From: Macrostomum lignano
Lineage: Eukaryota
NCBI GenBank assembly: GCA_002269645.1
Contig: NIVC01000785.1
Coordinates: 220,054-284,053 of the forward strand
Length of the DNA: 64,000 nt
Direction of reading: 5' to 3'
In this document: positions 3,871 to 63,678 of the stretch, piece after piece
Numbering within the stretch: position 1 is the first letter of the stretch
Layout: each line of letters begins with the position of its first letter
Made by a program: the position numbers and the translations under genes
The notes under the pieces: generated by a model
Told to the model about the DNA's origin: nothing
The model's database searches: none
What the model saw: only the letters and a program-made list of their open reading frames with translations

Positions 3871-3913
3871 CAGAGGGTGGTGGGAATGGGCCAAGTCGCT
3901 GTTCAGGTCTCAC

Positions 3914-27061: not shown

Positions 27062-27744
27062 CCAATCCGTGCATTTTATTTCAGGTGCATTGCGAGATAC
27101 AAAAATTGTCAAATGTAAACCCGGTGCATTCTGGCTTGCCGGCTTTACTCTGTGAAAAGAAAGGGTTGGGGGGGGGCGTTAGCTGTCACGGGTTTGTTCT
27201 CCGGGCAGCCCCGGTCCAGGAGAACTAATAATCAGAGTCTGGTGCGATATAACTTGTCTGCATTCACAAATCTTAGATGAAAATATCAATATTTATATTT
27301 AGAAATAAATTTTCTATATCTCCCGGAGCTACGAAAATTTTATTTTGGTTTTAAATGTGAGCAAAGTTTGTACAAAAAAATCGTGTAAACAAAAATGACG
27401 TTAAAAAACGGGTAAGAGTTGTTAGTCCGGAGCTCTGGCTCTAGACCGCCTTGACCGGAGCTGACCTCTTTCTGTTTGCTTTTCTTTTTAGTTCAGGTCG
27501 TCAGTTCACTGCTTGTAAGATAAGTGTTTTTTTGTCGTCGCTATTTCTAAATACGCTTGTAGCTCTTCAGCTCTTGTTTTGTTTCAGGCGCGTGTAGGTT
27601 TTGTAGTTAAACGAGTTCGGGGTCATAAAAACTTTGCAATGGTTATAAATTTAGCGGCATACTATGAGTAAGAGCCAAACTATGAGCTATTGACTTAGGC
27701 AGGTCGGCTCAAAGGGTAAACGTATCTGACTCTTGTATCGGGGT

Positions 27745-28665
27745 CGGGGCTGGATCTCGGGACAATTCAGGACTGAATCTCGGGACAATTCGGGACTGAA
27801 TCTCGGGACAATTCAGGACTGAATCTCGGGACAATTCGGGACTGAATCTCGGGACAATCTGGACTGAATCTCGGGACAATCTGGACTGGATCTCGGGACA
27901 ATTCGGGACTGAATCTCGGGACAATCTGGACTGGATCTCGGGACAATCTGGACTGGATCTCGGGACAATTCGGGACTGGATCTCGGGACAATTCGGGACT
28001 GGATCTCGGGACAATTCGGGACTGGATCTTGGGACAAGTCGGGACTGAATCTCGGGACAATCTGGACTGAATCTTGGGACAAGTCGGGACTGAATCTCGG
28101 GGCATTTCAGGGACTGGATCTCGGGACAATTCGGGATTGGATCTCGGGACAATTCGGGACTCGATCTCGGGACATTTCGGGACTGGATCTCTGGACAATT
28201 CAGGACTGGATCTCGGGACAATTCAGGACTGAATCTCGGGACAATTCGGGACTGAATCTCGGGACAATTCAGGACTGGATCTCGGGACAATTCAGGACTG
28301 AATCTCGGGACAATCTGGACTGGATCTCGGGACGATTCGGGACTGGATTTTGGGACAATTCGGGACTGGATCTCGGGACAATTCGGGACTGGATCTCGGG
28401 ACAATCTGGACTGAATCTCGGGACAATTCGGGACTGAATCTCAAGACAATCTGGACTGAATCTCGGGACAATCTGGACTGGATCTCGGGACAATTCGGGA
28501 CTGGATCTCGGGACAGTTCAGGACTGAATCTCGGGACAATTCGGGACTGGATCTCGGGACATTTCAGGGACTGGATCTCGGGACAATCTGGACTGAATCT
28601 CGGGACAATCTGGACTGGATCTTGGGACAAGTCGGGACTGGATCTCGGGACAATTCAGGACTGGC
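27745..28665. repeat. 22/23-bp minisatellite (GGGACTGGATCTCGGGACAATTC), about 40 units
   Basis: Direct periodicity. Confidence 0.97.
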
Positions 28666-30994: not shown

Positions 30995-31830
30995 TTAATT
31001 GGGATCGGTAGGAGTAGAGTGTGGTAAATTTGGGATCGGTAGGAGTAGAGTGTGGTAAATTTGAGATAGGTAGGAGTAGAGTGTGGTAAATTTTAGATTG
31101 GTAGGAGTAGAGTGTGGTAAATGTGGGATCGGTAGGAGTAGAGTGTGGTAAATTTGAGATTGGTAGGAGTAGAGTGTGGTAAATTTGGGATCGGTAGGAG
31201 TAGAGTGTGGTAAATTTGAGATCGGTAGGAGTAGAGTGTGGTAAATGTGGGATCGGTAGGAGTAGAGTGTGGTAAATTTGAGCTTGGTAGGAGTAGAGTG
31301 TGGTAAATTTGAGCTTGGTAGGAGTAGAGTGTGGTAAATTTGGGATCGGTAGGAGTAGAGTGTGGTAAATTTGAGATAGGTAGGAGTAGAGTGGTAAATT
31401 TGAGATAGGTAGGAGTAGAGTGGTAAATTTGAGATAGGTAGGAGTAGAGTGGTAAATTTGGGATCGGTAGGAGTAGAGTGTGGTAAATTTGAGATAGGTA
31501 GGAGTAGAGTGTGGTAAATTTGAGATAGGTAGGAGTAGAGTGGTAAATTTGAGATAGGTAGGAGTAGAGTGGTAAATTTGGGATCGGTAGGAGTAGAGTG
31601 TGGTAAATTTGAGATAGGTAGGAGTAGAGTGTGGTAAATTTGAGATAGGTAGGAGTAGAGTGTGGTAAATTTTAGATTGGTAGGAGTAGAGTGTGGTAAA
31701 TTTGAGATAGGTAGGAGTAGAGTGTGGTAAATTTGAGATAGGTAGGAGTAGAGTGTGGTAAATTTTAGATTGGTAGGAGTAGAGTGTGGTAAATTTTAGA
31801 TTGGTAGGAGTAGAGTGTGGTAAATGTGGG
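30995..31830. repeat. 31-bp minisatellite (GGTAGGAGTAGAGTGTGGTAAATTTGAGATA), about 27 units
   Basis: Direct periodicity. Confidence 0.97.
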
Positions 31831-31879
31831 ATCAGGTGTGGGATCTCTGCAGTTAGTACTTGTTTTGTTAAAAGATCAG

Positions 31880-32934: not shown

Positions 32935-34000
32935 GAATCTTACCACCCCTTACTGAAATCTCACCACCCCTTACTGAAATCTCACCACCCCTTACTGGAA
33001 TCTCACCATCCCACAGTGGAATCTCACCACCCCTAACTGAAATCTCACCATCCTACAGTGGAATCTCACCACCCCTTACTGGAAACTCACCATCCCACAG
33101 TGGAATCTCAACACCCCTTACTGGAATCTCGCCACCCCTTACTCGAATCTCACCATCCCACAGTGAAATCTCACCACCCCTTACTGGAATCTCACCATCC
33201 CACAGTGGAATCTCAACACCCCTTACTGGAATCTCGCCACCCCTTACTCGAATCTCACCATCCCACAGTGGAATCTCAACACCCCTTACTGGAATCTCGC
33301 CACCCCTTACTCGAATCTCACCATCCCACAGTGAAATCTCACCACCCCTTACTGGAATCTCACCATCCCACAGTGGAATCTCAACACCCCTTACTGGAAT
33401 CTCGCCACCCCTTACTCGAATCTCACCATCCCACAGTGGAATCTCAACACCCCTTACTGGAATCTCACCACCCCTTACTCGAATCTCACCACTCCTTCCT
33501 TGAATCTCATACCGTTTACTGGAATCTCGCCACTCCTGACTGGAATCTCACCACCCGTTACTGGAATCTCACTATCCAACTGGAATCTTATTATACCCAC
33601 TAGAATCTCACTATCCAACTGGAATCTCATTATCCAACTGGAATCTCACTATCCAACTGGAATCTCACTATCCAACTGGAATCTCACTATGCCTAAGGGA
33701 ATCTCACTATGCCTAAGGGAATCTCACTATCCAACTGGAATCTCACTATCCAACTGGAATCTCACTATCTAACTAGAATCTCACTATGCCTAAGGGAATC
33801 TTACTATCCAACTGGAATCTCACTATGCCTAAGGGAATCTCACTATCCAACTGGAATCTCACTATGCCTAAGGGAATCTCACTATCCAACTGGAATCTCA
33901 CTATCCAACTGGAATCTCACTATCCAACTGGAATCTCACTATGCCTAAGGGAATCTCACTATCCAACTGGAATCTCACTATGCCTAAGGGAATCTCGCCA
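32935..34000. repeat. Compound minisatellite: 21-bp units grading into 19-bp units with shared GGAATCTCAC core
   Basis: Period 21 to about 33500, period 19 from about 33560. Confidence 0.95.
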
Positions 34001-34060
34001 CCCCTAATTACATGTAGAGAAGTCTCACCGCCGCAGCCCCGCGCCCCACTCACACAACAG

Positions 34061-35029: not shown

Positions 35030-35912
35030 AATGAGATCTCACCCTCTTGACACTGTCAGTCGATGAGATCTCACCCTCTTGACACTGTCAGTCGATGAGA
35101 TCTCACCCTCTTGACACTGTCAGTCGATGAGATCTCACCCTCTTGGCACTGTCAGTCGATGAGATCTCACCCTCTTGACACTGTCAGTCGATAAGATCTC
35201 ACCCTCTTGACACTGTCAGTCGAGGAGATCTCACCCTCTTGACACTGTCAGTCGAGGAGATCTCACCCTCTTGACATAGTCGATGAGATCTCATCCTCTT
35301 AACATAGTCAATGAGATCTCGCCCTCTTGACATAGTCAATGAGATCTCACCCTCTTGACATAGTCAATGAGATCTCACCCTATTGACATAGTCAATGAGA
35401 TCTCACCCTATTGACATTGTCAACGAGATCTCACCCTCTTGAGATAGGCAATGAGATCTATCACCCTCTTGACACTGTCAGTCAATGAGATATGACCCTC
35501 TTGACACTGTCAGTCGATGAGATCTCATCCTCTTGACATAGTCAATGAGATCTCACCCTCTTGGCATAGTCAATGAGATCTCACCCTCTTGACATAGTCA
35601 ATGAGATCTCACCCTCTTGGCATAGTCAATGAGATCTCACCCTCTTGACATAGTCAATGAGATCTCACCCTCTTGGCATAGTCAATGAGATCTCACCCTC
35701 TTGACATAGTCAATGAGATCTCACCCTCTTGGCATAGTCAATGAGATCTCACCCTCTTGACATAGTCAATGAGATCTCACCCTCTTGACATAGTCAATGA
35801 GATCTCACCCTATTGACATTGTCAACGAGATCTCACCCTCTTGAGATGGGCAATGAGATCTATCACCCTCTTGACACTGTCAGTCGATGAGATCTCACTC
35901 TCTTGACACTGT
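35030..35912. repeat. 32/28-bp minisatellite (GATGAGATCTCACCCTCTTGACACTGTCAGTC)
   Basis: Direct periodicity. Confidence 0.97.
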
Positions 35913-41364: not shown

Positions 41365-42250
41365 CTCAGGGATCTGAGGAGGTGCTCAAGCTGAGGATCC
41401 AATGAGGAGGTGCTCAAGCTGAGGATCCAATGAGGAGGTGCTCAAGCTGAGGATCCAATGAGAAGGTGCTCAAGCTGAGGAGTGCATGATGAGGAGATGC
41501 TCAAGCTGAGGAGTGCATGATGAGGAGGTGCTCAAGCTGAGGATCCAATGAGAAGGTGCTCAAGCTGAGGATCCAATGAGAAGGTGCTCAAGCTGAGGAG
41601 TGCATGATGAGGAGATGCTCAAGCTGAGGAGTGCATGATGAGAAGATGCTCAAGCTGAGCAGTGCATGATGAGAAGATGCTCAAGCTGAGGAGTGCATGA
41701 TGAGAAGATGCTCAAGCTGAGCAGTACATGATGAGAAGATGCTCAAGCTGAGGAGTGCATGATGAGAAGATGCTCAAACTGAGGAGTGCATGATGAGGAG
41801 ATGCTCAAGCTGAGGAGTGCATGATGAGGAGATGCTCAAGCTGAGGAGTGCATGATGAGAAGATGCTCAAGCTGAGGAGTGCATGATGAGGAGATGCTCA
41901 AGCTGAGCAGTGCATGATGAGAAGATGCTCAAGCTGATGAGTGTATGATGAGAAGATGCTCAAGCTGAGGAGTGCATGATGAGGAGATGCTCAAGCTGAG
42001 CAGTGCATGATGAGGAGATGCTCAAGCTGAGGAGTGTATGATGAGAAGATGCTCAAGCTGATGAGTGCATGATGAGGAGATGCTCAAGCTGAGGAGTGCA
42101 TGATGAGGAGATGCTCAAGCTGAGCAGTGCATGATGAGGAGATGCTCAAGCTGAGGAGTGTATGATGAGAAGATGCTCAAGCTGATGAGTGCATGATGAG
42201 GAGATGCTCAAGCTGAGGAGTGTATGATGAGAAGATGCTCAAGCTGAGCG
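41365..42250. repeat. 29/31-bp minisatellite (GCTCAAGCTGAGGAGTGCATGATGAGAAGAT)
   Basis: Direct periodicity. Confidence 0.97.
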
Positions 42251-42281
42251 CTCAGCCTGTGACGCTGGGACTCCAGCTCAC

Positions 42282-42830
42282 CGTGGCCAACTCAGAGACG
42301 CCATCGGAGCCGCCGCAGGCGAATACACGGCAGGCGCCGGTTCTGCCAACAACAGCGGCTGCAGAGAAGCGACTACGCGGGCCGCCTGCTAGCTCGGGTC
42401 CGGGACGCCAGGCGCCGCTGTCCGGGCAGTAGATCTCGCAGCTGCGCAGACACTGACCGCGATTATAACCCCCGGCAACCAGCAGTTTAAATCCGCCTTC
42501 GCTTTTATCGTCCAGTCTAACAGCGCCAAAGGAGGCCCTGGGCGACAGCATGTACGGGAAATGATCGCCGTGGCCGCTAGTAGACGCCGAGTTGTCGCTG
42601 TGAAATGAGACCACGCTGCTCTGGGCGGACGAGCGGCGTCGAACCCGGCACTGCTCCCGCAGCAGGGGGTCCTCGGCTAGGGGCAGCTGGCGCACGCTCA
42701 TGAGACAGAGGGAGGGGCCGAGCCGGGCGAGCAGGAGCAGGCAGCTGGCGCCAGCCCGCTGCTGCGGCTGCTGATCGATTATTGACAGCACTCGAGAGGG
42801 CAGCTGACGTGAGGAGCGCTGGTTGTTGCT
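42282..42830 (-). CDS. IVNS1ABP: BTB-Kelch protein exon 3 (linker plus first Kelch repeats)
   Basis: aatcccag|AGC ... ACG|gtgagc; AGGYNRGQCLRSCEIY resembles NS1-BP AGGYNREECLRTVECY as recalled. Confidence 0.8.
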
Positions 42831-42892
42831 CTGGGATTTATTAGGGAAGAGAGGGAGGCTGAGGCTGTTGTATTTGAAAATCACAGTGTATC

Positions 42893-44015
42893 AGGCTGGC
42901 TCAGCAACTGACACTCTGGGAGGCTGGCTCAGCAACTGACACTCTGGGAGGCTGGCTCAGCAACTGACACTCTGGGAGGCTGGCTCAGCAACTGACACTC
43001 TGGAAGGCTGGCTCAGCAACTGAGGATCTGGGAGGCTGGCTCAGCAACTGACACTCTGGGAGGCTGGCTCAGCAACTGACACTCTGGGAGGCTGGCCCAG
43101 CAACTGACACTCTGGGAGGCTGGCCTAGCAACTGACACTCTGGGAGTGGGAGGCTGGTCCAGCAACAGAGGATCTGGGAGGCTGGTCCAGCAACTGACAC
43201 TCTGGGAGGCTGGCCCAGCAACTGAGGATCTGGGAGGCTGGCCCAGCAACTGAGGATCTGGGAGGCTGGCCCAGCAACTGACACTCTGGGAGGCTGGCCC
43301 AGCAACTGACACTCTGGGAGGCTGGCCCAGCAACTGACACTCTGGGAGGCTGGCCCAGCAACTGACACTCTGGGAGGCTGGCCCAGCAACTGAGGATCTG
43401 GGAGGCTGGGCCAGCAACTGAGGATCTGAGAGGCTGGCACAGCAACTGAGGATCTGGGATGCTGGCTCAGCAACTGACACTCTGGGAGGCTGGCCCAGCA
43501 ACTGACACTCTGGGAGGCTGGCCCAGCAACTGACACTCTGGGAGGCTGGCCCAGCAACTGAGGATCTGGGAGGCTGGCCCAGCAACTGAGGATCTGGAAG
43601 GCTGGCCCAGCAACTGAGGATCTGGGAGGCTGGCCCAGCAACTGACACTCTGGGAGGCTGGCCCAGCAACTGACACTCTGGGAGGCTGGCCCAGCAACTG
43701 ACACTCTGGGAGGCTGGCCCAGCAACTGACACTCTGGGAGGCTGGCCCAGCAACTGACACTCTGGGAGGCTGGCCCAGCAACTGAGGATCTGGGAGGCTG
43801 GCCCAGCAACTGAGGATCTGGGAGGCTGGCCCAGCAACTGAGGATCTGGGAGGCTGGCCCAGCAACTGAGGATCTGGGAGGCTGGCCCAGCAACTGAGGA
43901 TCTGGGAGGCTGGCCCAGCAACTGAGGATCTGGGAGGCTGGCCCAGCAACTGAGGATCTGGGAGGCTGGCCCAGCAACAGAGGATCTGGGAGGCTGGCAT
44001 AGCAACAGAGGATCT
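42893..44015. repeat. 28-bp minisatellite (GGCTGGCCCAGCAACTGACACTCTGGGA), about 40 units
   Basis: Direct periodicity. Confidence 0.97.
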
Positions 44016-44022
44016 AACGCAC

Positions 44023-44531
44023 CATGATCTTAGCGTGCATCCGACGCGAATCAATGTAATCCCTCAGCTGAGGCAGGTGGCTGGCCAGCTCAAGCTTCGC
44101 GTCGTCGGCGGCCGCAGCGTCCTCGGGACCCGAGGAGTCGGACAAAGCCACCGCAGCAGCCGCAGCGACAACAGCCGTGGCGAACTGCTGCTGCTCGCAG
44201 TCGATAACAGCCGAACCGTCTGAGGTCAGGTAGAGCAGGTGAACCTGGCCGGCGATGTGCGCCAGGAGTCGCTGAGCAGTGGCTGTCTGGCAGAAGTCGC
44301 CGAGAGTAGCGACAGCTTCGCCGTACTCCTTCGCCCCGCCGGAGCCAGTCACTGTATTCCGGTCCGCGTCCCCGTTGTCGCTCAAGTCCGTGTCGCTGTC
44401 GGACGAGTCGGAGTCGGAAGTGCGGCGGTGTCGATCCCGACAGTCCAGTATCAGACGGTGTAGGGTTCCGGCGAACCAGTCGCACAGCAGGTCGCCTATA
44501 GCGGCTGAGCTGGCGGTCTCAGTGGAGCCGA
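44023..44531 (-). CDS. IVNS1ABP: BTB-Kelch protein exon 2 (BACK-like, acidic Ser insert)
   Basis: ctcgcag|TC phase 1, ATG|gtgcgt phase 0; open throughout. Confidence 0.75.
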
Positions 44532-44547
44532 CTGCGAGTGAGGACAG

Positions 44548-45082
44548 GTGTGTGTGCTGCCAGCTCTTGTTTGTGTGCTGCCAGCTCTTGTTTGTGTACT
44601 GCCAGCTCTTGTTTGTGTGCTGCCAGCTCTTGTTTGTGTACTGCCAGCTCTTGTTTGTGTACTGCCAGCTCTTGTTTGTGTGCTGCCAGCTCTTGTTTGT
44701 GTGCTGCCAGCTCTTGTTTGTGTGCTGCCAGCTCTTGTTTGTGTGCTGCCAGCTCTGAGCTCTTGTTTGTGTGCTGCCAGCTCTTGTTTGTGTGCTGCCA
44801 GCTCTGAGCTCTTGTTTGTGTGCTGCCAGCTCTTGTTTGTGCGCTGCCAGCTCTTGTTTGTGTGCTGCCAGCTCTTGTTTGTGTGCTGCCAGCTCTTGTT
44901 TGTGTGCTGCCAGCTCTTGTTTGTGTGCTGCCAGCTCTTGTTTATGTGCTGCCAGCTATAGTGAGTGTGCTGCCAGCTATAGTGAGTGTGCTGCCAGCTA
45001 TAGTGATTGTGCTGCCAGCTCTTGTTTATGTGCTGCCAGCTATAGTGAGTGTGCTGCCAGCTATAGTGAGTGTGCTGCCAGT
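44548..45082. repeat. 21-bp minisatellite (GTGCTGCCAGCTCTTGTTTGT)
   Basis: Direct periodicity. Confidence 0.96.
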
Positions 45083-45704
45083 TCTGAATCAGTCAGTGGG
45101 TAGGTACCTAGTGACACCAATACATTACATATTAAGGGAAACCTCTATAAAGTCACACGATATAATAATACTCATACGTGGATTTCGCATGGTATTCATA
45201 GCATAACTTTCAACGGAAAGCAGCTAACAGAACCCAGTTTTTCAGGCAGTTTAAACCCAGTTTTAGTTGTAGGAGTTACCAGTAAATCGAATAGCGATAC
45301 ATAAATCACATGCAGTCAGCTAAAGTAGCAATTTCACTCTCACTGCTAGTGCCTGCTATGCCATCCCAAAGCGGTGTAGCTAGGAAGGCAACAAGTAAAC
45401 ATGTTATTGCGCACTTTTATAATCAAGTCGCGACTCGTGACTTAAGAGAAGTTTGTTAATTTTAAAGATATTAAGAATTCATATAGATTGCGTAACTCTT
45501 ACCTAGCAGGTCAACTTTTATCTTAGGCAGCGGACAATCCAAGTCCAAGTCTACTATCTCTGCCAAATGCTGCACAATGTAGTTATCGATACCGTCAACT
45601 AGGCTGTCAAAGTCGGTTACTTGGGAGCGAAGCTCTGAAATATGGCACAGAGTTTTGGGAGAATTCATACAGATAGTATTAGAGGAATTCATGCCGGATT
45701 ACCC

Positions 45705-46095
45705 GTGACACCTGTGGGATTTTAGATCAATGGGGGATTAGTGGCAACACCTGTGGGATCTGATATCCATGGGAGATTAGTAGCGAGACACCTGTGGGAT
45801 CTGAGATCCATGGGATGTTAAAGGCGAACATCTTTGGGATCTGAGATCCATGGGAGATTAGTGGCGAGACACTTGGGGGATCTGAGATCCATGGGAGATT
45901 AGTGGCGAGACACCTGGGGGGATCTGAGATCCATGGGAGATTAAAGGCGAACACCTGTGGGATCTGAGATCCATGGGAGATTAGTGGCGACACTAATGTG
46001 AGATCTGAGATCCATGGAGATTAGCGACACCTGGGGGATCTATAGGAGATTAGCGACACTAGTGGGATCTGAGATCCATGGGAGATTAGTGGCGA
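45705..46095. repeat. About 40-bp minisatellite (GGGATCTGAGATCCATGGGAGATTAGTGGCGA...)
   Basis: Direct periodicity. Confidence 0.9.
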
Positions 46096-46164
46096 CATGT
46101 GGGGGAGCTCCAAGATGCACAATCAAGCTGCGGAAAAGAAGGCACAAAAGCAGAATACACCAAC

Positions 46165-46552
46165 CAAGCACGTTGCGCGGCTTCAACCCAGCCAGTAGTG
46201 TCTGGGCGCAGTACTTGACCAGAACAGGCAGGCGTAGGTAGCAGGCTGCCGAGTGCAGCTGGGCCAGAGCCAGAGGCTCCATCGAGCCGGGATCCGGCAG
46301 GCAGCCGGTGTAGACAAAGTGCAGCGCATGGCTAAACGCATCAGGCGTGAGATGACGCGGTAGGTTAAAGTGTCCACAGTTTGGTTCCTCAGTTAGCAGG
46401 CGCATGAAATGCGGTGACGCCGCCGCTAGAACGCATTTGTGCGCCAGAAAGCGGCGCCCGTGAACGCTAATCTGCAGATCGCAAAACATGCCCTCCTCGC
46501 GTAGCTTGGCCAGCTTGGCCAGGTGATCGGGTATGCCACTAGGCTCAGACAT
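46165..46552 (-). CDS. IVNS1ABP: BTB-Kelch protein exon 1 (BTB)
   Basis: FCDLQISVHGRRFLAHKCVLAAASPHF; donor G|gttggt phase 1. Joined CDS is 2148 nt (715 aa). The symbol rests on recalled similarity only. Confidence 0.85.
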
Positions 46553-47644: not shown

Positions 47645-48290
47645 GGCAACCAATCAAAAGGGTGACAGATGAAAAGGGCAACAGTCAAAAGGGCGATAGT
47701 CAAAAGGGTGACAGGGTATTAGACCAAGAACTACTTAAGTAGAAGATTGGGAAACCTTGTTTCTTTGAAAATCTTAGAATCTGCCTCCTATCAAAAGCAA
47801 TAACAAGATATGTTAAGACATTAGAAATATTAGGCCTAGAATTGTAAGTGTTGGTATTGTGCATGTATATATACATTAATGTACATTTAAACAGTTCAAT
47901 GAGGTTTATTTATTTTATTTATTTACTTCAAATACTGGAGAAAATTCAGCCGTGGCAACTGCTTAGCAGATGATCTACTAAAGGCAGTTAGTGAAATAAA
48001 TGGACCTCACTGAACCACATTTTAACATTAATAGTGTGTCCAATATGTGTCCAGCTTTTATACATAACTGCTTGTACATTTTTAACAATGTAACAATGTA
48101 TGGTAACAATACCATATATTGTTTTAACAAATACAAGTATGATACATTTTTACTGCTCTAGCAGTAACAAATACTTCTAATGTATATGGAACTTGTAATT
48201 TCAATATAAGTACACTGTAACTGTCGCCCTTTAGATTCTCGCCCTTTTGACTATCGCCCTTTTGATCTGTCACCCTTTTGACTTGCAGCC
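47645..48290. mobile_element. MULE-like MITE
   Basis: GGC termini, inverted CAAAAGGGYGAYAG subrepeats, exact 9-bp TSD TTGTATAAT at 47636-47644 and 48291-48299. Confidence 0.82.
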
Positions 48291-48788: not shown

Positions 48789-49452
48789 GGCAGTGCTTAT
48801 CCCCACGGTACCGTAGGAATAATTTCTGTCTTATTCCAACGGTACCGTGCGAATAATTTTCTGCTTATCCGCACGGCACACTGAGGAGATAGCTGCCCTA
48901 TCTTCTACATATGCCGTGCGAATAATTTTCTGCTTATCCGCATGGCACACTGACGAGATAGCTGCCCTATCTTCTACATATGCCGTGTTTAGTACATACG
49001 ATTTGAGTGCAGTATAACAACTTTGTTGAATTATTGTTGAATAAGTATACAGAAGGGTATCAGTAAAGCAGAATAACACGCATTTACACATGCATATACT
49101 AGTCTAGAACTGATTCGAGTTTATACATCATCAAGATCAACAGCTTCTTAGTATCCTCAGTTCAAATTCCCTTTCAATAAGCTATAAACTATTCACGCAC
49201 AACATATATATGTAGCAGATAAAAACCGATAGGGCAGCTAGTAAAGCAGAGGAAATAAAACAGAGGACGTGTAGGGCAGCTATCTCGTCAGTGTGCCGTG
49301 CGGATAAGCAGAAAATTATTCCCACGGCATATGTAGAAGATAGGGCAGCTATCTCGTCAGTGTGCCGTGCGGATAAGCAGAAAATTATTCGCACGGTACC
49401 GTTGGAATAAGACAGAAATTATTCCTACGGTACCGTGGGGATAAGCACTGCC
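48789..49452. mobile_element. MULE-like mini-foldback with about 190-bp internally repetitive TIRs
   Basis: GGCAGTGCTTATCCCCACGG / CCGTGGGGATAAGCACTGCC; exact 9-bp TSD TTTTAAGAT at 48780-48788 and 49453-49461. Confidence 0.9.
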
Positions 49453-51294
49453 TTTTAAGATAGGGTGTCCTATCATGTTTTTTAACTTAAAACATTTGTA
49501 ACTTTTGAACCAAAATAGATCTAGAACAAGGCTGCAAAAAGCAATCTATATCAAACTTCTAGTTATATATTTTTATATAGCTGCTTATGAATCCTAAATT
49601 AACTAAACACATAGGTCATAGTAGAGCATAAACTAGGCCTATGCTGATGGTTATTTGGTGATAAAAATGACTTGACTTAGTTTGAATTAATTTATTTGTA
49701 TACCTAACTTTTATGCTTTTTCCTAGAATGTTTCCATAGTTCAGATTGTGTTTTAATGTACACTGGGTTTATGCCAGAAAAAATGACAAGACCTCATTTG
49801 TATGCCAGGTCCATAGTCCAGATCATGCTGGGTGCATGCCTGAACAAAAAATCAATAGTTACAAATGCACACTAATAAAACTGAGTGCATGTGCCCATTC
49901 TTAAAACTCTATAGGTGCTGCAACAACAAATGACCTTTTTCACATTGTGACAATAAATGACCTTTTTTATTGCATAATAGACCTTTTTGACAGATATTTG
50001 GTTTTGGCAATACTATTTATAGTAGAAAATTGATACATGCATAGATTTGTTTAAATGACTTATTACTAAAAAAATTATGATTGATATTTTCTTATTTAAC
50101 AAGTCTACTTTATGACTTTCAGACTTATGTTAATGTTGGTTGCTTGCTTGCAGGTTGCAGCCATTGCTGGTTGGGTTGGGCTCCCTAAATACATATGCCC
50201 TTGTAATAGTAGTAGCAATATTAAATGACTCAGGAAAAAAGCCTGACTGGTCAATATGAAAAGCTGTTTATCTAATTTTCTTGTTAAAAGTAAATTGAAT
50301 GTACTAAATCTAAATTATAGGCCTCCTCTTGGGCCTAGGCGCCTCCCGAAGTTAATATTTTCTACGAACTTATTAAATTTGAGTTTGCGCAAATTCAAAT
50401 TACTTTTTGTATATTAAAAACAAAGCAAAACACGCCAAGTACAGTAAACTTTGTAGCACAAAATAATATTAGCTTTAAGAAAAAATTATTTTAGTATATT
50501 TAAATCTTTCGGTTTCACACAAGTTGTGTAGGCTGAAGTATTTATGGTGACGTTTAAATTTGACTCTCCGGCCCGATCGACGAGGCGCCGCGCGGCTCTG
50601 CGCTGCCCTGCCCGCCGACTAATTAGGTCTATGAGCAAGGACAAACCTATGCAATTTTTGCCTTTTTTAATAATTCCTGTTCTGTATTTAAATACAGCCT
50701 GTTGTTCTATTGTTTTTCGTTGAAGACCACCCGAAGATGCTGTTAAATATATTAGACCGAAAGGCGTGCTTTTAATTAAATACAAAATTTAGTACTGTGA
50801 TTAGTTCTGTAATTTGTAAATTCTGTAAAACAAAGTTCTGTAATGTGTAAATTATAAACTTTTACTAGGGCCTAGTACTGTTTTATTTCTAAGTATATAT
50901 TAGGGCGCCCAATAAAATGCAGAATCCACAGCGGAATTGGAATAGTAATAGAATAGCTCAGTAAAATGCGGAATCCGTAGCGGAATGGTATAATGCAGAA
51001 TGAGCAATGGAATCCAGTAACTTTAACTAAAATGCAAATGCAAAGTAGCTGAAGTGCATTTTGATCTATTATTATATATAATCTTATAACAATAAAGCTT
51101 TCAAAATTTTACCAAACTACTAGAGAGAAAATTATAATACTTTTCAACACCCATCAGCCATGTTATTTATGAGAGAACCTATATTACTACTTTGAGTAAG
51201 GTCCAGTAGATGCTGCTATTTCTAGTTCAGTTTGCCTCCATATAGAATCATATTCAAATTTCTTTATATTGATGCAGGCCCCTTCGCAAGTTTA

Positions 51295-52035: not shown

Positions 52036-52776
52036 TTAAAACAAATGAATGGCTAAAACAAATTATTCGCATCATTAAAACAAAATATTATTCAGTAAAA
52101 CAAATTTACGAATTAAAACAAATCATACGGTACTTATTATTTTGGCGGGAATTTAATTTCGCGGAAACAAACTAATTTTCTAGGAATAAACATAAGCCCT
52201 TCTACAATATATCTTTTTTATATAGTTAAATTGCTGTTGGCAAAGCTATATATATTTAAAATTTCATTTTTTATCCTTACATTTTTCATTTTATGTTAGT
52301 GGATTCCATAGTCAGGAAGGTGGCAAGTGCACGCGGGAATCAATTTATGGAAAAATCCTTGGTGCACGCCAATGTACACCAATTTTTTAAAACCCTTAAC
52401 ATGACGTTTCTGTTGCATGCCAAAAATCTTGAATACCAAAAATCATGTACGCCGAAAATTGTAGTATACCGTATTAGATACTATTTTTAAATAAATTTTC
52501 TACTTACGTTAAACAAAGTTTATATATAGAAAAAGGAAATTCGCTTCAAAGAACATAGTGAGTATCAAAAACTTTTTCTTCACATTTCAAGAAACAAATA
52601 AACTAAAAGTCTACAAGAGTCACAAAATAAGAGCGTTTAAAAGTTATTAGATATTTTAATTTTAATGTTGGCTAGTAGAGTGTAGGCCTGGACTGTACGC
52701 ATTTGTTTCCCCATTGATATTCGCATTGATATTCGAATTTTAACAAAAGCAAAATACTAAAAGCAACCCGTAGCAT

Positions 52777-55700
52777 GAAACTTTACACAGAGTAAACTGC
52801 AACCGTGAAACGACTATTGGTCAAGTTTCAGCTCGATATGTAACTTTGGCTCTGAGCAGGAGCGATTTTCGATGTGTTCCATTTAAAATACATGTGATTC
52901 CAAAATTCGTATTGATATTCGAGTACAGGTACTTCTGCTTCACTGATCTTGACGAAACTTTACACAGAGTAAACTGCAACCGTGAAACGACTATTGGTCA
53001 AGTTTCAGCTCGATATGTAACTTTGGCTCTGAGCAGGAGCGATTTTCGATGTGTTCCATTTAAAATACATGTGATTCCAAAATTCGTATTGATATTCGAG
53101 TACAGGTACTTCTGCTTCACTGATCTTGACGAAACTTTACACAGAGTAAACTGCAACCGTGAAACGACTATTGGTCAAGTTTCAGCTCGATATGTAACTT
53201 TGGCTCTGAGTAGGAGCGATTTTCGATGTGTTCCATTTAAAATACATGTGATTCCAAAATTCGTATTGATATTCGAGTACAGGTACTTCTGCTTCACTGA
53301 TCTTGACGAAACTTTACACAGAGTAAACTGCAACCGTGAAACGACTATTGGTCAAGTTTCAGCTCGATATGTAACTTTGGCTCTGAGCAGGAGCGATTTT
53401 CGATGTGTTCCATTTAAAATACATGTGATTCCAAAATTCGTATTGATATTCGAGTACAGGTACTTCTGCTTCACTGATCTTGACGAAACTTTACACAGAG
53501 TAAACTGCAACCGTGAAACGACTATTGGTCAAGTTTCAGCTCGATATGTAACTTTGGCTCTGAGTAGGAGCGATTTTCGATGTGTTCCATTTAAAATACA
53601 TGTGATTCCAAAATTCGTATTGATATTCGAGTACAGGTACTTCTGCTTCACTGATCTTGACGAAACTTTACACAGAGTAAACTACAACCGTGAAACGACT
53701 ATTGGTCAAGTTTCAGCTTGATATGTAACTTTGGCTCTGAGCAGGAGCGATTTTCGATGTGTTCCATTTAAAATACATGTGATTCCAAAATTCGTATTGA
53801 TATTCGAGTACAGGTACTTCTGCTTCACTGATCTTGACGAAACTTTACACAGAGTAAACTGCAACCGTGAAACGACTATTGGTCAAGTTTCAGCTCGATA
53901 TGTAACTTTGGCTCTGAGCAGGAGCGATTTTCGATGTGTTCCATTTAAAATACATGTGATTCCAAAATTCGTATTGATATTCGAGTACAGGTACTTCTGC
54001 TTCACTGATCTTGACGAAACTTTACACAGAGTAAACTGCAACCGTGAAACGACTATTGGTCAAGTTTCAGCTCGATATGTAACTTTGGCTCTGAGCAGGA
54101 GCGATTTTCGATGTGTTCCATTTAAAATACATGTGATTCCAAAATTCGTATTGATATTCGAGTACAGGTACTTCTGCTTCACTGATCTTGACGAAACTTT
54201 ACACAGAGTAAACTGCAACCGTGAAACGACTATTGGTCAAGTTTCAGCTCGATATGTAACTTTGGCTCTGAGTAGGAGCGATTTTCGATGTGTTCCATTT
54301 AAAATACATGTGATTCCAAAATTCGTATTGATATTCGAGTACAGGTACTTCTGCTTCACTGATCTTGACGAAACTTTACACAGAGTAAACTGCAACCGTG
54401 AAACGACTATTGGTCAAGTTTCAGCTCGATATGTAACTTTGGCTCTGAGCAGGAGCGATTTTCGATGTGTTCTATTTAAAATACATGTGATTCCAAAATT
54501 CGTATTGATATTCGAGTACAGGTACTTCTGCTTCACTGATCTTGACGAAACTTTACACAGAGTAAACTGCAACCGTGAAACGACTATTGGTCAAGTTTCA
54601 GCTCGATATGTAACTTTGGCTCTGAGTAGGAGCGATTTTCGATGTGTTCCATTTAAAATACATGTGATTCCAAAATTCGTATTGATATTCGAGTACAGGT
54701 ACTTCTGCTTCACTGATCTTGACGAAACTTTACACAGAGTAAACTGCAACCGTGAAACGACTATTGGTCAAGTTTCAGCTTGATATGTAACTTTGGCTCT
54801 GAGCAGGAGCGATTTTCGATGTGTTCCATTTAAAATACATGTGATTCCAAAATTCGTATTGATATTCGAGTACAGGTACTTCTGCTTCACTGATCTTGAC
54901 GAAACTTTACACAGAGTAAACTGCAACCGTGAAACGACTATTGGTCAAGTTTCAGCTCGATATGTAACTTTGGCTCTGAGCAGGAGCGATTTTCGATGTG
55001 TTCCATTTAAAATACATGTGATTCCAAAATTCGTATTGATATTCGAGTACAGGTACTTCTGCTTCACTGATCTTGACGAAACTTTACACAGAGTAAACTG
55101 CAACCGTGAAACGACTATTGGTCAAGTTTCAGCTCGATATGTAACTTTGGCTCTGAGCAGGAGCGATTTTCGATGTGTTCCATTTAAAATACATGTGATT
55201 CCAAAATTCATATTGATATTCGAGTACAGGTACTTCTGCTTCACTGATCTTGACGAAACTTTACACAGAGTAAACTGCAACCGTGAAACGACTATTGGTC
55301 AAGTTTCAGCTCGATATGTAACTTTGGCTCTGAGTAGGAGCGATTTTCGATGTGTTCCATTTAAAATACATGTGATTCCAAAATTCGTATTGATATTCGA
55401 GTACAGGTACTTCTGCTTCACTGATCTTGACGAAACTTTACACAGAGTAAACTGCAACCGTGAAACGACTATTGGTCAAGTTTCAGCTCGATATGTAACT
55501 TTGGCTCTGAGCAGGAGCGATTTTCGATGTGTTCCATTTAAAATACATGTGATTCCAAAATTAATATTGATATTCGAGTACAGGTACTTCTGCTTCACTG
55601 ATCTTGACGAAACTTTACACAGAGTAAACTGCAACCGTGAAACGACTATTGGTCAAGTTTCAGCTCGATATGTAACTTTGGCTCTGAGCAGGAGCGATTT

Positions 55701-56798
55701 TCGATGTGTTCCATTTAAAATACATGTGATTCCAAAATTCGTATTGATATTCGAGTACAGGTACTTCTGCTTCACTGATCTTGACGAAACTTTACACAGA
55801 GTAAACTGCAACCGCGAAACGACTATTGGTCAAGTTTCAGCTCGATATGTAACTTTGGCTCTGAGCAGGAGCGATTTTCGATGTGTTCCATTTAAAATAC
55901 ATGTGATTCCAAAATTAATATTGATATTCGAGTACAGGTACTTCTGCTTCACTGATCTTGACGAAACTTTACACAGAGTAAACTGCAACCGTGAAACGAC
56001 TATTGGTCAAGTTTCAGCTCGATATGTAACTTTGGCTCTGAGCAGGAGCGATTTTCGATGTGTTCCATTTAAAATACATGTGATTCCAAAATTAATATTG
56101 ATATTCGAGTACAGGTACTTCTGCTTCACTGATCTTGACGAAACTTTACACAGAGTAAACTGCAACCGTGAAACGACTATTGGTCAAGTTTCAGCTCGAT
56201 ATGTAACTTTGGCTCTGAGCAGGAGCGATTTTCGATGTGTTCCATTTAAAATACATGTGATTCCAAAATTCATATTGATATTCGAGTACAGGTACTTCTG
56301 CTTCACTGATCTTGACGAAAATTTACACAGAGTAAACTGCAACCGTGAAACGACTATTGGTCAAGTTTCAGCTCGATATGTAACTTTGGCTCTGAGCAGG
56401 AGCGATTTTCGATGTGTTCCATTTAAAATACATGTGATTCCAAAATTCATATTGATATTCGAGTACAGGTACTTCTGCTTCACTGATCTTGACGAAACTT
56501 TACACAGAGTAAACTGCAACCGTGAAACGACTATTGGTCAAGTTTCAGCTCGATATGTAACTTTGGCTCTGAGCAGGAGCGATTTTCGATGTGTTCCATT
56601 TAAAATACATGTGATTCCAAAATTCGTATTGATATTCGAGTACAGGTACTTCTGCTTCACTGATCTTGACGAAACTTTACACAGAGTAAACTGCAACCGT
56701 GAAACGACTATTGGTCAAGTTTCAGCTCGATATGTAACTTTGGCTCTGAGCAGGAGCGATTTTCGATGTGTTCCATTTAAAATACATGTGATTCCAAA
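52777..56798 (+). repeat. 177-bp satellite, left arm (about 22.7 units)
   Basis: Period 177 (52846 to 53023; ORF starts 885 and 1062 bp apart); units nearly identical. Confidence 0.98.
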
Positions 56799-59311
56799 CA
56801 ACAACAACAACAACAGAGTACGCTGCCAGTTCGCAAAAGCAGCGTCAGATGGCGCGCTTCGAAGCTTGGGCGCGAACAAAGGCCGCACCGCCGGCAGAGT
56901 CCGGGGTGCCGGCGTAAGCCAGCAGACAGTCGACGTAGCGCCGAGTCCTCGCCTGTCCCCGCCGGTAGGGTGCCTGCAACGTAAGTAGCAGCACCTCCTG
57001 CACCGGCTCCGGACAGTAGGCCTCGGTGCGGATGACGTGGCCTGCTAGCTGGAGTCGCCGACGGCGCAGCAGATCGCTAGGACGGGCCAGGCCGGCGCGA
57101 TGATAGAGCGCCGTGTTGGTGACTCGCTCGTTGCCGATCTTGAAGGCGGCGCGCAGCAGGCCAGCGTGCGCCGCGTCGACTTGAGCCTCGAGCGAGTCTA
57201 TCAGCGTCCAGGTCTCGGCGTTGTATAACAGGACGGTCTCGATCACCGCCTGGAACAGCGCCGCCCTCTGGCGGTCCGGTAGGGCCTCGGACTGCAGGAC
57301 TGACCTTATAGAACGAAAGGCAGCCCAGGCAAGTCCTCGGCGACGCCGCAGATCCTCGCGGACGTCGGGAACCAGACCGCCGAGGTAGACGAACTGCTGA
57401 CATCTTGGAAGCTCACTCGCCTGTCCATCAGCGCCTCGGCAGAAGATTGCAGCCTCGGTGTCGTCCGGCACGCATAGCACGACGGTCTTCTGCGTGTTGA
57501 CCACCAGGCCGACGCTCGCCGCAACGGCAACCAGTCTATCCAGCTGTCGTTGGGCGCCCTCGAGGGCGAGGTCATCGGCGTAGCCAAGCACGCTGAGCCG
57601 TCTCTCCGGTTGGCGTCGACCCACGCGTCGCCGCAGCAGGAAGCCGTCGTCGTTGGAAGGCAGAGCAGTCCGTAGCACCCAGTCAAGCACCAGAATAAAT
57701 AGGAACGGCGCTAGCGTATCTCCCTGGAGCACCCCGGAGGATGTCTCGAAGAAATCCGATAGGCCGTCCGGTGTTTAGACAGCAGCCGTCGTGCCGTGAT
57801 ATAGCGCCATGACAGCAGAAATCAGCAGGTCTGGCACGTTGTACGCACGGAGCACCTCTGGGAGCGCGTCCCTCACGACCGAGTCGAAGGCCTTCCTGAA
57901 ATCGACGAAGATCAGGATCAGGGTCAACTGGCGGATGCGCGCCTCCTCGATGACTCGCCGAAGAGCCAGGATCTGCGTCACTGTGCCGCGATGGGGCCGG
58001 AATCCGTTCTGCTCAGGCCACAGGTACGGGTCCAGCACAGTCTGTAACCGCGATAGCAGCATGCGGTTGAACAGCTTCGCGGCGCAGGACTGTAGGCAGA
58101 TGCCTCGATGCTCCTCGAGCTTGGTGGTGCCCGGCTTCTTTGGAATGGCGACGATGTGCGCCGTGGTCCATTCGTTTGGCGCCACCTCACCGGAAAGCAC
58201 GCGGTTCATCACTCTGGCGACCTGAGTGGCCACGCAGTGGATCCGCAGCGCCTCGGTGGGCACCTCGTCTGGACCAAGCGCTTTGCCGCCCGGCGACTGC
58301 CGAGCGAACTTCACAACGTCGGCTGTGCTGACTGGGGCAACGTTGAAGCTCTCCTCCGCCGGCAACGGCGTCTCCGGCGGCAGCCTCAGATTTTCTGGAA
58401 GCGGAGGGGGCGGCGCGTTGACAATGGCGGCGAAGAACTCGCGCAGCTCGTTCCTGCGCTCATCCGGAATGTCGCCTGCTTGGTTGAGCGCGATGCGCCG
58501 CTTTCGCCCCGTCAGAGTGTTGATGACGGACCAGGCCACGCGCCCTCTGGCATCGGGCCCTGCGGCAGAGACGGCTTGGATGGCGTCATCGACAGCGGAC
58601 TGCTGCCGCTGCAGGTAGACAGCCGCCAGAGCCTCCTCCGCCTCACGAGTTTGCCGCCCACTCAGACGGAGCCTCTCCAGATCTTCCCTCGCTTCGTCGA
58701 TCGCGGGGTCGTCCTGCCAGACCGGCTGCCCGCGCTGGGCCGGTCGCATCAGCGGGACTGCTTGCTCCGCAGCGGCTCGAACTGCAGCGCTCACCTCCGC
58801 GTACTCGGCTCCTCCACGCTTGTCGCCCAGCGCAGTGACAAAGACACCGGCAAAGCGACGCCGCGTCTCGGCGTCCCTGAGCGCGCGGTAGCAGCGCCGC
58901 GGTGGCCGCTTTGGCGGACGGTAGAGCGGGTCCCGAAGCCGAAGGTCGCAGATGAGCAGCCGATGGTCGGACAGCAGAGCCAGCGGCGTAATGGTGCGGC
59001 AGTTGGTGACGCGGCGGCACTCACGAAAGCGCATAAGCACGTGGTCGAGCTGTGCCAGCCTCCGCGTAGCGTTCCGGCCGCGCGCGTTCCGCCGCCTCTG
59101 CTTGCAGCCGACGAAGGTCGCGAGCCTGCCCGGTGACTTGCGGAATCTGGTGTTGGCCGACACCATGTCCTGTCTCTCCAGGAAGTCCTCTAGCGCTCCG
59201 GTGTTGCCGTTCTCGCGAGCTGTCACAAACAGCGATCGCTCGGACCTACGCAGAACTGCGTTCAGGTCTCCGAGAATGACCACTGTGTCACGTTGCGCCA
59301 TCTCCTCCACC
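56797..59311 (-). mobile_element. 5'-truncated, young APE-RT LINE with (TTG)n tail
   Basis: ORFs 57775-59310 and 56845-57732 are one frame split by a single TAA; partial APE, RT (FVDFRKAFDSV, LQGDTLAPFLF, YADD); tail at 56797-56814. Confidence 0.96.
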
Positions 59312-60701
59312 TGTACTCGAATATCAATATGAATTTTGGAATCACATGTATTTTAAATGGAACACATCGAAAATCGCTCCTGCTCAGAGCCAAAGTTACA
59401 TATCGAGCTGAAACTTGACCAATAGTCGTTTCACGGTTGCAGTTTACTCTGTGTAAAGTTTCGTCAAGATCAGTGAAGCAGAAGTACCTGTACTCGAATA
59501 TCAATATGAATTTTGGAATCACATGTAATTTAAATAGAACACATCGAAAATCGCTCCTGCTCAGAGCCAAAGTTACATATCGAGCTGAAACTTGACCAAT
59601 AGTCGTTTCACGGTTGCAGTTTACTCTGTGTAAATTTTCGTCAAGATCAGTGAAGCAGAAGTACCTGTACTCGAATATCAATATGAATTTTGGAATCACA
59701 TGTATTTTAAATGGAACACATCGAAAATCGCTCCTGCTCAGAGCCAAAGTTACATATCGAGCTGAAACTTGACCAATAGTCGTTTCACGGTTGCAGTTTA
59801 CTCTGTGTAAAGTTTCGTCAAGATCAGTGAAGCAGAAGTACCTGTACTCGAATATCAATATGAATTTCGGAATCACATGTATTTTAAATGGAACACATCG
59901 AAAATCGCTCCTGCTCAGAGCCAAAGTTACATATCGAGCTGAAACTTGACCAATAGTCGTTTCACGGTTGCAGTTTACTCTGTGTAAAGTTTCGTCAAGA
60001 TCAGTGAAGCAGAAGTACCTGTACTCGAATATCAATACGAATTTTGGAATCACATGTATTTTAAATGGAACACATCGAAAATCGCTCCTGCTCAGAGCCA
60101 AAGTTACATATCGAGCTGAAACTTGACCAATAGTCGTTTCACAATTGCAGTTTACTCTGTGTAAAGTTTCGTCAAGATCAGTGAAGCAGAAGTACCTGTA
60201 CTCGAATATCAATATTAATTTTGGAATCACATGTATTTTAAATGGAACACATCGAAAATCGCTCCTGCTCAGAGCCAAAGTTACATATCGAGCTGAAACT
60301 TGACCAATAGTCGTTTCACGGTTGCAGTTTACTCTGTGTAAAGTTTCGTCAAGATCAGTGAAGCAGAAGTACCTGTACTCGAATATCAATACGAATTTTG
60401 GAATCACATGTATTTTAAATGGAACACATCGAAAATCGCTCCTGCTCAGAGCCAAAGTTACATATCGAGCTGAAACTTGACCAATAGTCGTTTCACGGTT
60501 GCAGTTTACTCTGTGTAAAGTTTCGTCAAGATCAGTGAAGCAGAAGTACCTGTACTCGAATATCAATACGAATTTTGGAATCACATGTATTTTAAATGGA
60601 ACACATCGAAAATCGCTCCTGCTCAGAGCCAAAGTTACATATCGAGCTGAAACTTGACCAATAGTCGTTTCGCGGTTGCAGTTTACTCTGTGTAAAGTTT
60701 C
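59309..60701 (-). repeat. 177-bp satellite, right arm, inverted (about 7.8 units)
   Basis: Reverse complement of the left-arm unit. Confidence 0.98.
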
Positions 60702-62210
60702 ATGCTACGGGTTGCTTTTAGTATTTTGCTTTTGTTAAAATTCGAATATCAATGCGAATATCAATGGGGAAACAAATGCGTTGGACTGTAGGCTAGGCTG
60801 TAGCCTCAACTAGTTGGTTTAATGAATATTCAAATTCAATTGTTCACGTTTAACTTTATATATTGTATATATATAGTGTATACATCTATATTTGACTTGT
60901 TGATATACTGTCAGTTTGTATTTGCACGCCAAGGTTACACGCCAAGTAAAAAACTTATACGCTGAAAATTTAGGCGTGGCTTGAGACCCCTATTTGCACG
61001 CCAACTTTGCACACCAAAATTTTAGCGTGGCTTGTGCACGCGGGAAAATTCCCGCGTGCAGGCCACCTTCCTGAGTATGAAGTGGATTCCATATTTGATT
61101 TTGTATTTTACCATTCTGCTGCTAATTCTACGTTTTACTATGCTATTCCATTCTGATTCCCCTGTGGATTCCACATTTTACCGGGTACCATATATTAGGC
61201 CTAGCAAATACAGATAATTTGTTCAAAACTTTAGAGCAATGCTAGACCTGTGCCATGGAGGATTTAGTAAAAAAAATTCACATTTTAAGCAATTTTTGCA
61301 CTTTGGATAGAAAGACTTGGATTTAGAAAATTTTAAAATAGCCTATGTTAGATGTCACTTTCTATATATGTTCATTTTTATGCTTAGTATATCATGGCCA
61401 TAAGATAAAGATAGTCTCGACTCTCTTACTAGGCCAGCCCTAGGCTTACTATAAATGTAAATTTTGAATTTTATAATTTAAGCATATTTGAATGGCAATA
61501 AGGCAGGACTACTAGCTATATAGTAACAAGCTTATTTGACTAAAGGCAAGCTAGTGCTAGCTAAATAGTAGAAAAATTTTATGGGCAATAGGCCCAGCTG
61601 GCTAGCTAGAGTTTTGGCACCACAACACAACTCATTTTCTAAGTTCTAATGGCTATGGATCTGGCAGTGCTATATAGAACTTAAAAAATATTTTAAAAGA
61701 TTAAAAAGACTAGGCCTAATAAGAATATGGCTTATATCTATTTAAAATTCAACATTAAAAGTATCTCCTTTCAAATCTTGAGACTCATCATCTAGTCTTA
61801 AATCTTATCTAGAACAAAGTCTCAATTTCTGCTACTTATAGAAAAACTATACTCCAGAAGGCATAGATCATGCTGAAAAATTCTGGCATGCATTTAGTTT
61901 AGCCTAAAATTGTAGCATGCATTGGCATATATTTGGGTATTGTATGCCAAAAGTGGCATGTTGGCATGCTATGGCATAGAAATAGCAGGCATAATAATAG
62001 TGAGGCATATTTTTTAAGACAAAAGTTCATGAAAAGACTTTGTATTGTGAAATGAAGACAAGAATTCATACTTATTTTTATTGCAAAATAACAAGTAAAT
62101 TTTATTGTGCCAAAAAAAGTTATTTACTTAGTATATTTATTATTTGCATGCTACAATAGTTTTAAAAAATGTTGAAGACTCAATAACATGATCTACATAC
62201 ATGTGCAAAT

Positions 62211-63336: not shown

Positions 63337-63678
63337 ATGGCAACCAGAGCTGGTGGTGATGCCACCTACTCGGTGAATGACAAGGCTAAGCCAGGCTTCA
63401 TTCGGGTCTCCTTTGACCTGCCAGGTCTGAAGAAGGGCCTGCTAGATGGCAGCAAAAATGCCAAGAAGACTAGCAATTCAACCCTGAATGTGTCAATCGC
63501 GCCTGGCTCAGCTCACTTTGGCAGCGTGTCAATCAAAGGCCAGACGAAAGGTCACGTGATTGAGTACCAGCTACGCGCTGATCCCTCCGAGCTGCTCGGC
63601 GCGTGGCTTGGCTCCCCGCCCAGCTACTATGAGGTTGAGCAGGGAGTCCTGAGGGTCTTTCTCAAGCTAGCTGATTGA
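63337..63678 (+). CDS. Small protein, possibly HSP20/alpha-crystallin-like fold
   Basis: GC-rich island in AT-rich DNA, ATG in CCATGG context; VSFDLPGLKK and EQGVLRVFLK resemble alpha-crystallin beta3 and beta9 motifs. Confidence 0.5.
   Translation: MATRAGGDATYSVNDKAKPGFIRVSFDLPGLKKGLLDGSKNAKKTSNSTLNVSIAPGSAHFGSVSIKGQTKGHVIEYQLRADPSELLGAWLGSPPSYYEVEQGVLRVFLKLAD

Follow-up and report, generated by a model that had tools for sequence, protein, structure and literature searches.

A probable foldback-type DNA transposon with satellite-repeat arms and a retrotransposon fragment at its centre in the flatworm Macrostomum lignano

Introduction

FB (Foldback, or FB-NOF), a Mutator-superfamily transposon of Drosophila melanogaster, has arms of 10-, 20- and 31-bp units that expand inward, makes a target-site duplication (TSD) of 9 bp and has a known partner, NOF; its foldback arms are able to flank a transposase gene. 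Galileo, of the P superfamily and the Drosophila buzzatii group, makes a TSD of 7 bp and has ends of the P-type consensus. THAP-domain sites footprinted near the end of Galileo recur in the tandem repeats of its terminal inverted repeats (TIRs) (PMC3688188). Tetris of Drosophila virilis (Dias et al. 2014) is composed of a terminal flanking domain and 220-bp tandem repeats, which have 37 bp in common (about 80% identity), and is bounded by TSDs of 8-10 bp; all its copies are non-coding, its autonomous partner is unknown, and its repeat is documented genome-wide as an independent satellite (PMC4079207). Mutator is the superfamily in which most foldback elements have been placed (PMC4079207). Here we describe an element of this construction from the flatworm Macrostomum lignano. 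It occupies positions 52697-60781 of a 64,000-nucleotide stretch of contig NIVC01000785.1 (assembly GCA_002269645.1), referred to below as the window, and its inverted arms are arrays of a 177-bp repeat.

The element is probably a genuine non-autonomous foldback-type class II DNA transposon that was inserted here as a unit. Its architecture is close to those of Tetris, FB and Galileo, and it adds a member to a known structural class rather than being a new kind of element. As in Tetris, a unique flanking domain is followed by a satellite-sized array (of 177-bp rather than 220-bp units), the arms are non-coding and vary in their number of units, and the flanking domain has a stretch in common with the unit, 18 bp long and identical at 17 positions here. 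The Tetris flanking domain, however, reaches 866 bp as against 80 bp, and the present element belongs to another phylum and has neither an inner TIR domain nor a native middle domain, its centre being a fragment of a long interspersed nuclear element (LINE). The resemblance is architectural only, and kinship by sequence is not expected. A preliminary description of the locus had likened it to FB and Tetris, and the flanking domain, 220-bp repeats, 8-10-bp TSDs and shared stretch of the latter make the comparison apt (PMC4079207).

The element is non-coding, as most FB copies are, and is like FB in having inverted arms that consist almost entirely of tandem repeats and are unequal in length, but its repeat is a 177-bp satellite rather than units of 10, 20 or 31 bp, and its TSD is most simply read as 8 rather than 9 bp. 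Galileo offers foldback-like long TIRs with repeated binding sites, and with them a functional model for a 12-mer motif discussed below; its TIRs extend to about 1.2 kb with few repeats, and, unlike the present element, it encodes a P-like transposase. Rehavkus, Phantom and the flatworm Mutator-like elements (MULEs) Curupira and MuDR_Sm provide a further parallel in their TSDs of 8-11 bp, long TIRs, minisatellites and occurrence in Platyhelminthes (PMC6446971). These elements are defined by their transposases, however, and their minisatellite adjoins one TIR, whereas here the arrays form both arms. MULE TSDs measure 8-11 bp, usually 9, and MULEs have been reported in Platyhelminthes (PMC6446971).

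Results

The left end of the element is an 80-bp terminal (flanking) domain, unique and non-satellite, that begins ACGCATTTG (52697-52776, + strand). The right terminal domain (60702-60781, - strand) is its exact inverted copy, with 0 of 80 mismatches between one end and the reverse complement of the other, as the preliminary description had claimed. When up to three mismatches are allowed, the terminal 27-mer ACGCATTTGTTTCCCCATTGATATTCG has two sites in the whole window, both at the tips of the element, against a chance expectation of 0; no copies of the terminus beyond these two ends are found elsewhere in the 64 kb. The octamer TGGACTGT abuts each tip, at 52689-52696 on the left and at 60782-60789 on the right, in the contexts ...GTAGGCC TGGACTGT and TGGACTGT AGGCTAGG..., respectively. 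An exact 8-bp match at a fixed position has a chance probability of 1/65536. The similarity of the flanks ends with this direct repeat.

The right TSD copy is followed by an A, and the element itself begins with A. The TSD could therefore formally measure 9 bp, TGGACTGTA, with the ends offset by one base (left end at 52698). This reading was overlooked in the preliminary description, which was correct in reporting an 8-bp repeat on both sides. A TSD of 8 bp leaves the ends perfectly symmetrical and is the simpler interpretation.

The outer junctions bear directly on whether the structure was inserted at all. It might instead be a non-mobile palindrome made in situ, in which a break in a 177-bp array was followed by foldback (hairpin) inverted duplication and patching with LINE complementary DNA, so that the termini would represent a duplicated array edge. 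Such a duplication would be expected to copy, in inverted orientation, the DNA that lies beyond the array edge, but inverted identity ends precisely at ACGC on both sides. Outer flanks that are unrelated apart from a direct 8-bp repeat are the signature of integration at a staggered cut. An origin in situ is judged quite unlikely, even when the features of the arms and centre that favor it, which are taken up below, are given their weight.

Two stretches of weak inverted similarity were observed further out in the flanks. One pairs 50913-51016 with 61083-61180 (73% over 104 bp); the other pairs 52307-52340 with 61048-61079 (88% over 34 bp). Given the weak inverted similarity of its flanks, the foldback element may have inserted within an older, decayed TIR element.

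Internal to the termini are the two arrays. Tandem Repeats Finder reports a period of 177 for both, with 22.7 copies and 99% matches in the left array (52777-56798, + strand) and 7.9 copies and 98% matches in the right array (59309-60701, - strand), which runs in the opposite orientation. The arms measure 4102 and 1473 bp, of which the arrays contribute 4022 and 1393 bp, and, measured from the tips, the arms match each other in inverted orientation over 1473 nt at 99%. The unequal, opposed arms of 177-bp units that had been proposed are thus present, but they do not make up the whole 8 kb, since 56799-59308, or 31% of the element, is a LINE fragment. The ends, the arrays and TGGACTGT together uphold the original identification of the locus as a TIR transposon of foldback type, with tandem repeats in its arms and a TSD outside them.

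Assembly of near-identical 177-bp arrays is difficult, and the unit counts of the two arms could be in error. One might go further and attribute the entire inversion to an error of assembly or reading, either a chimeric palindromic long read in which an adapter was missed or a mis-join inside the satellite array. False palindromes, however, have equal and identical arms and mirrored flanks, whereas the arms seen here have 22.7 and 7.9 units and carry differing variants; between them stands a LINE of 2.5 kb that has a tail of its own, and both outer junctions enter different unique DNA, with a TSD. An artefact of this kind seems very improbable.

Variation among the units, each of which was scored against the consensus, reveals something of the history of the arms. 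In L1-L15 of the left arm the variants C81T and C58T recur every six units, and the mean number of mismatches falls to 0.33 when units are compared with those 6 or 12 positions away, as against 0.8-1.5 at other shifts. This higher-order periodicity points to amplification of a block of ~1062 bp, through unequal exchange, in the outer part of the left arm. A second group of variants, G133A, C132A, C5A and T30C, is seen only in L14-L21 and in the right arm. Thus 133A is present in 0/13 of units L1-13, in 6/9 of L14-22 and in 5/8 of the right-arm units (Fisher p about 0.001-0.003), and the rare pairing of 5A with 133A is found in one unit of each arm, L21 on the left and R7 on the right, which lie at similar distances from the centre. 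Because these derived variants are common to L14-L21 and the right arm, the right arm is the counterpart of the inner left arm.

Total mismatches do not define a register between the arms: by hand count they number 17, 16 and 15 at shifts of 0, 14 and 15 units, with no single best value. The distribution of shared derived variants is the only informative signal. It appears that the arms were formerly more symmetrical, at some 8-10 units apiece, before the left arm grew in its outer part; the inequality of the arms is attributed to the six-unit amplification on the left. The likeness of the right arm to the inner left arm would also be expected of a palindrome made in situ.

Long open reading frames (ORFs) of 291-731 amino acids cross the arrays, at 52846-56988 (+) and 59262-60632 (-). 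They arise because the unit length is a multiple of three (177 = 59 x 3) and one of its frames is free of stops. The open frame, 59 amino acids per unit, has no homologues among 5.8 billion proteins. These pseudo-ORFs were judged to be a chance effect, one open frame of six over 59 codons being unremarkable.

The terminus and the 177-bp unit are connected by a short motif. The sequence ATTGATATTCG is found 34 times in the window against an expectation of 0.02, always in the same orientation relative to its own element end. Two copies lie in the left terminus, at 52713 and 52725, and are mirrored at 60743 and 60755; the remainder occur once in each unit that reaches the phase of the motif. The preliminary description was right about the pair in the terminus, but its statement that every unit has the motif fails for the last left unit, which is truncated at phase 128, short of ATTGATATTCG. 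In the terminus the copies form two tandem 12-mers, ATTGATATTCGC ATTGATATTCGA (52713-52736, + strand), 17-40 bp from the end. Local alignment places positions 23-40 of the terminus against positions 129-146 of the unit, and 17 of the 18 bp are identical, for a score of 31 where shuffled sequences average 16.5 (sd 2.3). The shared sequence, ATTCG[C/T]ATTGATATTCGA, corresponds to 1.5 copies of the tandem 12-mer of the terminus. Outside these 18 bp the terminus is unrelated to the unit.

By analogy with the Galileo footprints and the proposal made for Tetris, the 12-mer ATTGATATTCG[C/A] is plausibly a transposase-binding site, of which the arrays may supply ~30 extra copies.

The centre of the element is a dead, 5'-truncated non-LTR retrotransposon and nothing else. 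This LINE copy (56799-59308, - strand, 2510 bp) has a GC content of 64-66%, as against about 38-39% in the arms. Its ORF runs from 59310 to 56845 (-) and comprises 821 codons interrupted by a single premature stop at 57775-57777. Both halves of the ORF match Pfam RVT_1 (E = 7e-13 and 7e-5), the N-terminal half aligns with proteins bearing an Exo_endo_phos endonuclease domain, and the nearest named relatives are Macrostomum lignano reverse-transcriptase proteins. The 3' tail is (TTG)n, at 56799-56819. A paralogue with 88% nucleotide identity lies elsewhere in the window, at about 11887-13799 (the copy extends over ~11615-13803, + strand); it is longer at its 5' side, contains an ORF with RVT_1 (12462-13055) and, like the central copy, terminates in a T/G-rich tail. 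Other relatives lie on metagenome or Logan contigs of at most 3 kb, and these are without the satellite.

At the borders of the LINE the left arm breaks off at unit phase 128, the right at 154, and the two flanks are oppositely oriented. In ordinary target-primed insertion a co-linear target is duplicated or deleted. Here the LINE is bordered by left-arm DNA on its left and by right-arm DNA on its right, so the segment lost between the breaks must have included the point at which orientation switches. Both junctions display microhomology, CAA at the 3' junction (satellite ...TTCCAAA against the LINE tail) and GGT at the 5' junction (satellite ...GTACAGGT against LINE GGTGGAGG). The position of the LINE exactly at the orientation switch favors the formation of the palindrome in situ, as do the 2-3 nt of microhomology at both junctions, which recall end-joining or endonuclease-independent LINE capture. 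Long perfect palindromes are fragile at their centres. On the simplest account of the geometry, a palindrome that was present beforehand suffered a break or nick at or near its centre, and the LINE then integrated with deletion of the target site, or was captured during repair. A 2.5-kb LINE spacer would stabilise the palindrome.

Insertion of the LINE necessarily deleted DNA across the centre, and no original middle domain is left. The element could consequently be a decapitated master copy, an autonomous element whose transposase gene (Mutator-, hAT- or P-like) lay between the arms and was removed by the LINE-linked deletion, much as foldback arms can flank a transposase gene in FB-NOF and Galileo. 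Nothing transposase-like was detected in 52697-60781, however, where RVT_1 is the sole Pfam match, and most described foldback copies are non-coding, including all copies of Tetris (PMC4079207). We regard a formerly autonomous copy as unlikely.

The ends do not place the element in a superfamily. They read ACGCA, or CGCAT if the TSD is taken as 9 bp. The terminal consensus of hAT elements is 5'-YARNG and that of P elements is CANRG, P elements having TSDs of 7-8 bp; Mutator ends are poorly conserved. For hAT the 8-bp TSD fits, but both versions of the ends fall outside YARNG. For the P superfamily, Galileo included, the length of the TSD is compatible, but ACGCA falls outside CANRG. The earlier remark that the ACGC ends match no superfamily is sustained by comparison with these two consensuses. 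A TSD of 8 (or 9) bp lies within the 8-11 bp range of Mutator and MULE elements, a nonspecific agreement, as hAT and P also give 8 bp. The poor conservation of Mutator ends, the assignment of most foldback elements to Mutator and the presence of MULEs in flatworms incline us, tentatively and short of a claim of membership, toward a Mutator-like superfamily.

Other origins for the repeat were considered. Rfam contains no family that matches the whole window at the gathering threshold, or the terminus and units at E up to 1, and no tRNA-like sequence was found. A hammerhead or retrozyme-like satellite and a short interspersed nuclear element are ruled out as sources on these grounds, and a likeness of CTGATC...CGAAAC to the hammerhead core does not hold. 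Single-strand folding of the terminus and unit is no better than that of shuffled sequences (z = 0.63).

The foldback element lies in AT-rich non-coding DNA about 6.1 kb upstream of the start of a BTB-Kelch gene (42252-46552, - strand). This gene has a BTB exon at 46040-46552, for which a word-indexed search returned no homologue; its Kelch exon lies at 42252-42884, and minisatellites separate the two. Near the other end of the window, at 977-1633 (-), is an exon of a TRIM-NHL (Brat/NCL-1-like) gene that is 90% identical to the M. lignano B-box/NHL protein A0A1I8HPL8 (UniRef), the next-best matches, from molluscs and arthropods, being about 80%. Taken with the relatives of the LINE, this match points to a Macrostomum-like flatworm as the source of the window. 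The exon probably differs from the M. lignano reference copy of the gene. A 113-amino-acid ORF at 63337-63678 is absent from the contig index searched, as is an M. lignano LINE protein.

Two smaller elements between the BTB-Kelch gene and the foldback element resemble miniature inverted-repeat transposable elements (MITEs). The first, a foldback-like MITE of 664 bp (48789-49452), has GGC... ends that read GGCAGTGCTTATCC... and a 9-bp TSD, TTTTAAGAT; its inverted arms of 181 nt are 98% identical and include tandem sub-repeats of 34 and 69 bp. The second is a MITE-like element of 646 bp (47645-48290), with GGC... ends, a 9-bp TSD, TTGTATAAT, and, in each arm, subterminal tandem repeats of 15 bp, TCAAAAGGGCGACAG. 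The combination of 9-bp TSDs and subterminal repeats in these two small foldback-like MITEs indicates that transposases handling repeat-laden ends have acted in the genome. A third MITE candidate, at 10810-11236, has the motif ATAATTTTnnGCTTATCC in common with the 48789 element; its ends are approximate.

Tandem repeats are abundant in the remainder of the window. At least 11 minisatellite arrays, with units of 21-63 bp, lengths of 0.4-1.2 kb and in many cases a high GC content, lie within 33-46095; they occupy about 17% of what is left of the window when the foldback element is set aside. Examples are found at 33-820, 2687-3883, 27744-28664, 30999-31837, 32935-34005, 35030-35908, 41375-42248 and 42893-44006. 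No inverted repeats clearly above the level of shuffled sequence flank these other minisatellites.

Discussion

A scheme for the origin of the locus can be drawn from these features. A DDE transposase acting in trans would recognise both identical 80-bp ends, probably via the tandem 12-mer ATTGATATTCG[C/A] that lies 17-40 bp from each tip, and would make a staggered cut of 8 (possibly 9) bp at TGGACTGT. The 177-bp arrays may in effect be TIRs of great length, supplying some 30 secondary binding sites, and would expand and contract through unequal exchange. At a later time whatever first joined the arms, a junction or a middle domain, would have been lost as a 5'-truncated LINE copy entered the centre of the palindrome with deletion of its target site; the LINE would now act as a 2.5-kb spacer.

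Several considerations weigh against transposition as the explanation of the locus. Only a single copy of the element is seen within the 64-kb window, and it is multi-copy status that defines transposon families. The double 12-mer was sought in 241 million JGI metagenome records, a collection not expected to include the host genome, and the 16 loci recovered are chance matches to the motif only (at most 28 bp). Neither the element (52697-60781) nor the large ORFs of the window yielded a transposase or an autonomous relative. The terminal nucleotides fit none of the superfamily consensuses considered, and binding of a protein to the 12-mer, a candidate site, is purely inferential. Finally, with no native middle domain left, a LINE-free joining of the arms in a mobile element cannot be demonstrated.

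The element had been described as young. Its perfectly matched termini (0/80) and intact TSD make a recent insertion plausible, but a LINE appears to have arrived since and to have acquired a nonsense mutation, and homogenisation can preserve the identity of the arrays. No paper in the library searched links foldback elements with flatworms or Macrostomum, an absence that speaks weakly for an undescribed family.

A broader proposal can be considered, though we hold it to be doubtful. The element may belong to a recently or currently active, undescribed family of flatworm foldbacks, moved by a transposase that, in view of the ACGC ends, is possibly outside the well-characterised superfamilies. 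Such a family would carry 177-bp arrays to new loci and seed dispersed satellite, adding to the high tandem-repeat load of Macrostomum-type genomes, and capture of LINEs would be a recurrent means of stabilising its palindromes. Simple or tandem repeats constitute about 15% of the M. lignano genome (PMC5730564).

The locus reveals no new mechanism. It does display at one site three processes, the amplification of a block of units, asymmetry of the arms and invasion of a palindrome centre by a LINE, and it supplies a defined candidate binding motif, ATTGATATTCGCATTGATATTCGA in the terminus, for biochemical work. Its significance would be greater if the family proved to be multi-copy and to seed 177-bp blocks free of the terminus, or if its transposase were unusual. 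There are few concrete routes for carrying tandem arrays to new chromosomal sites, where they can seed satellite DNA, and foldback elements with satellite-sized arm repeats are one of them. The well-documented cases come mostly from Drosophila, and a clean, apparently recent case in a flatworm would extend this route to another phylum.

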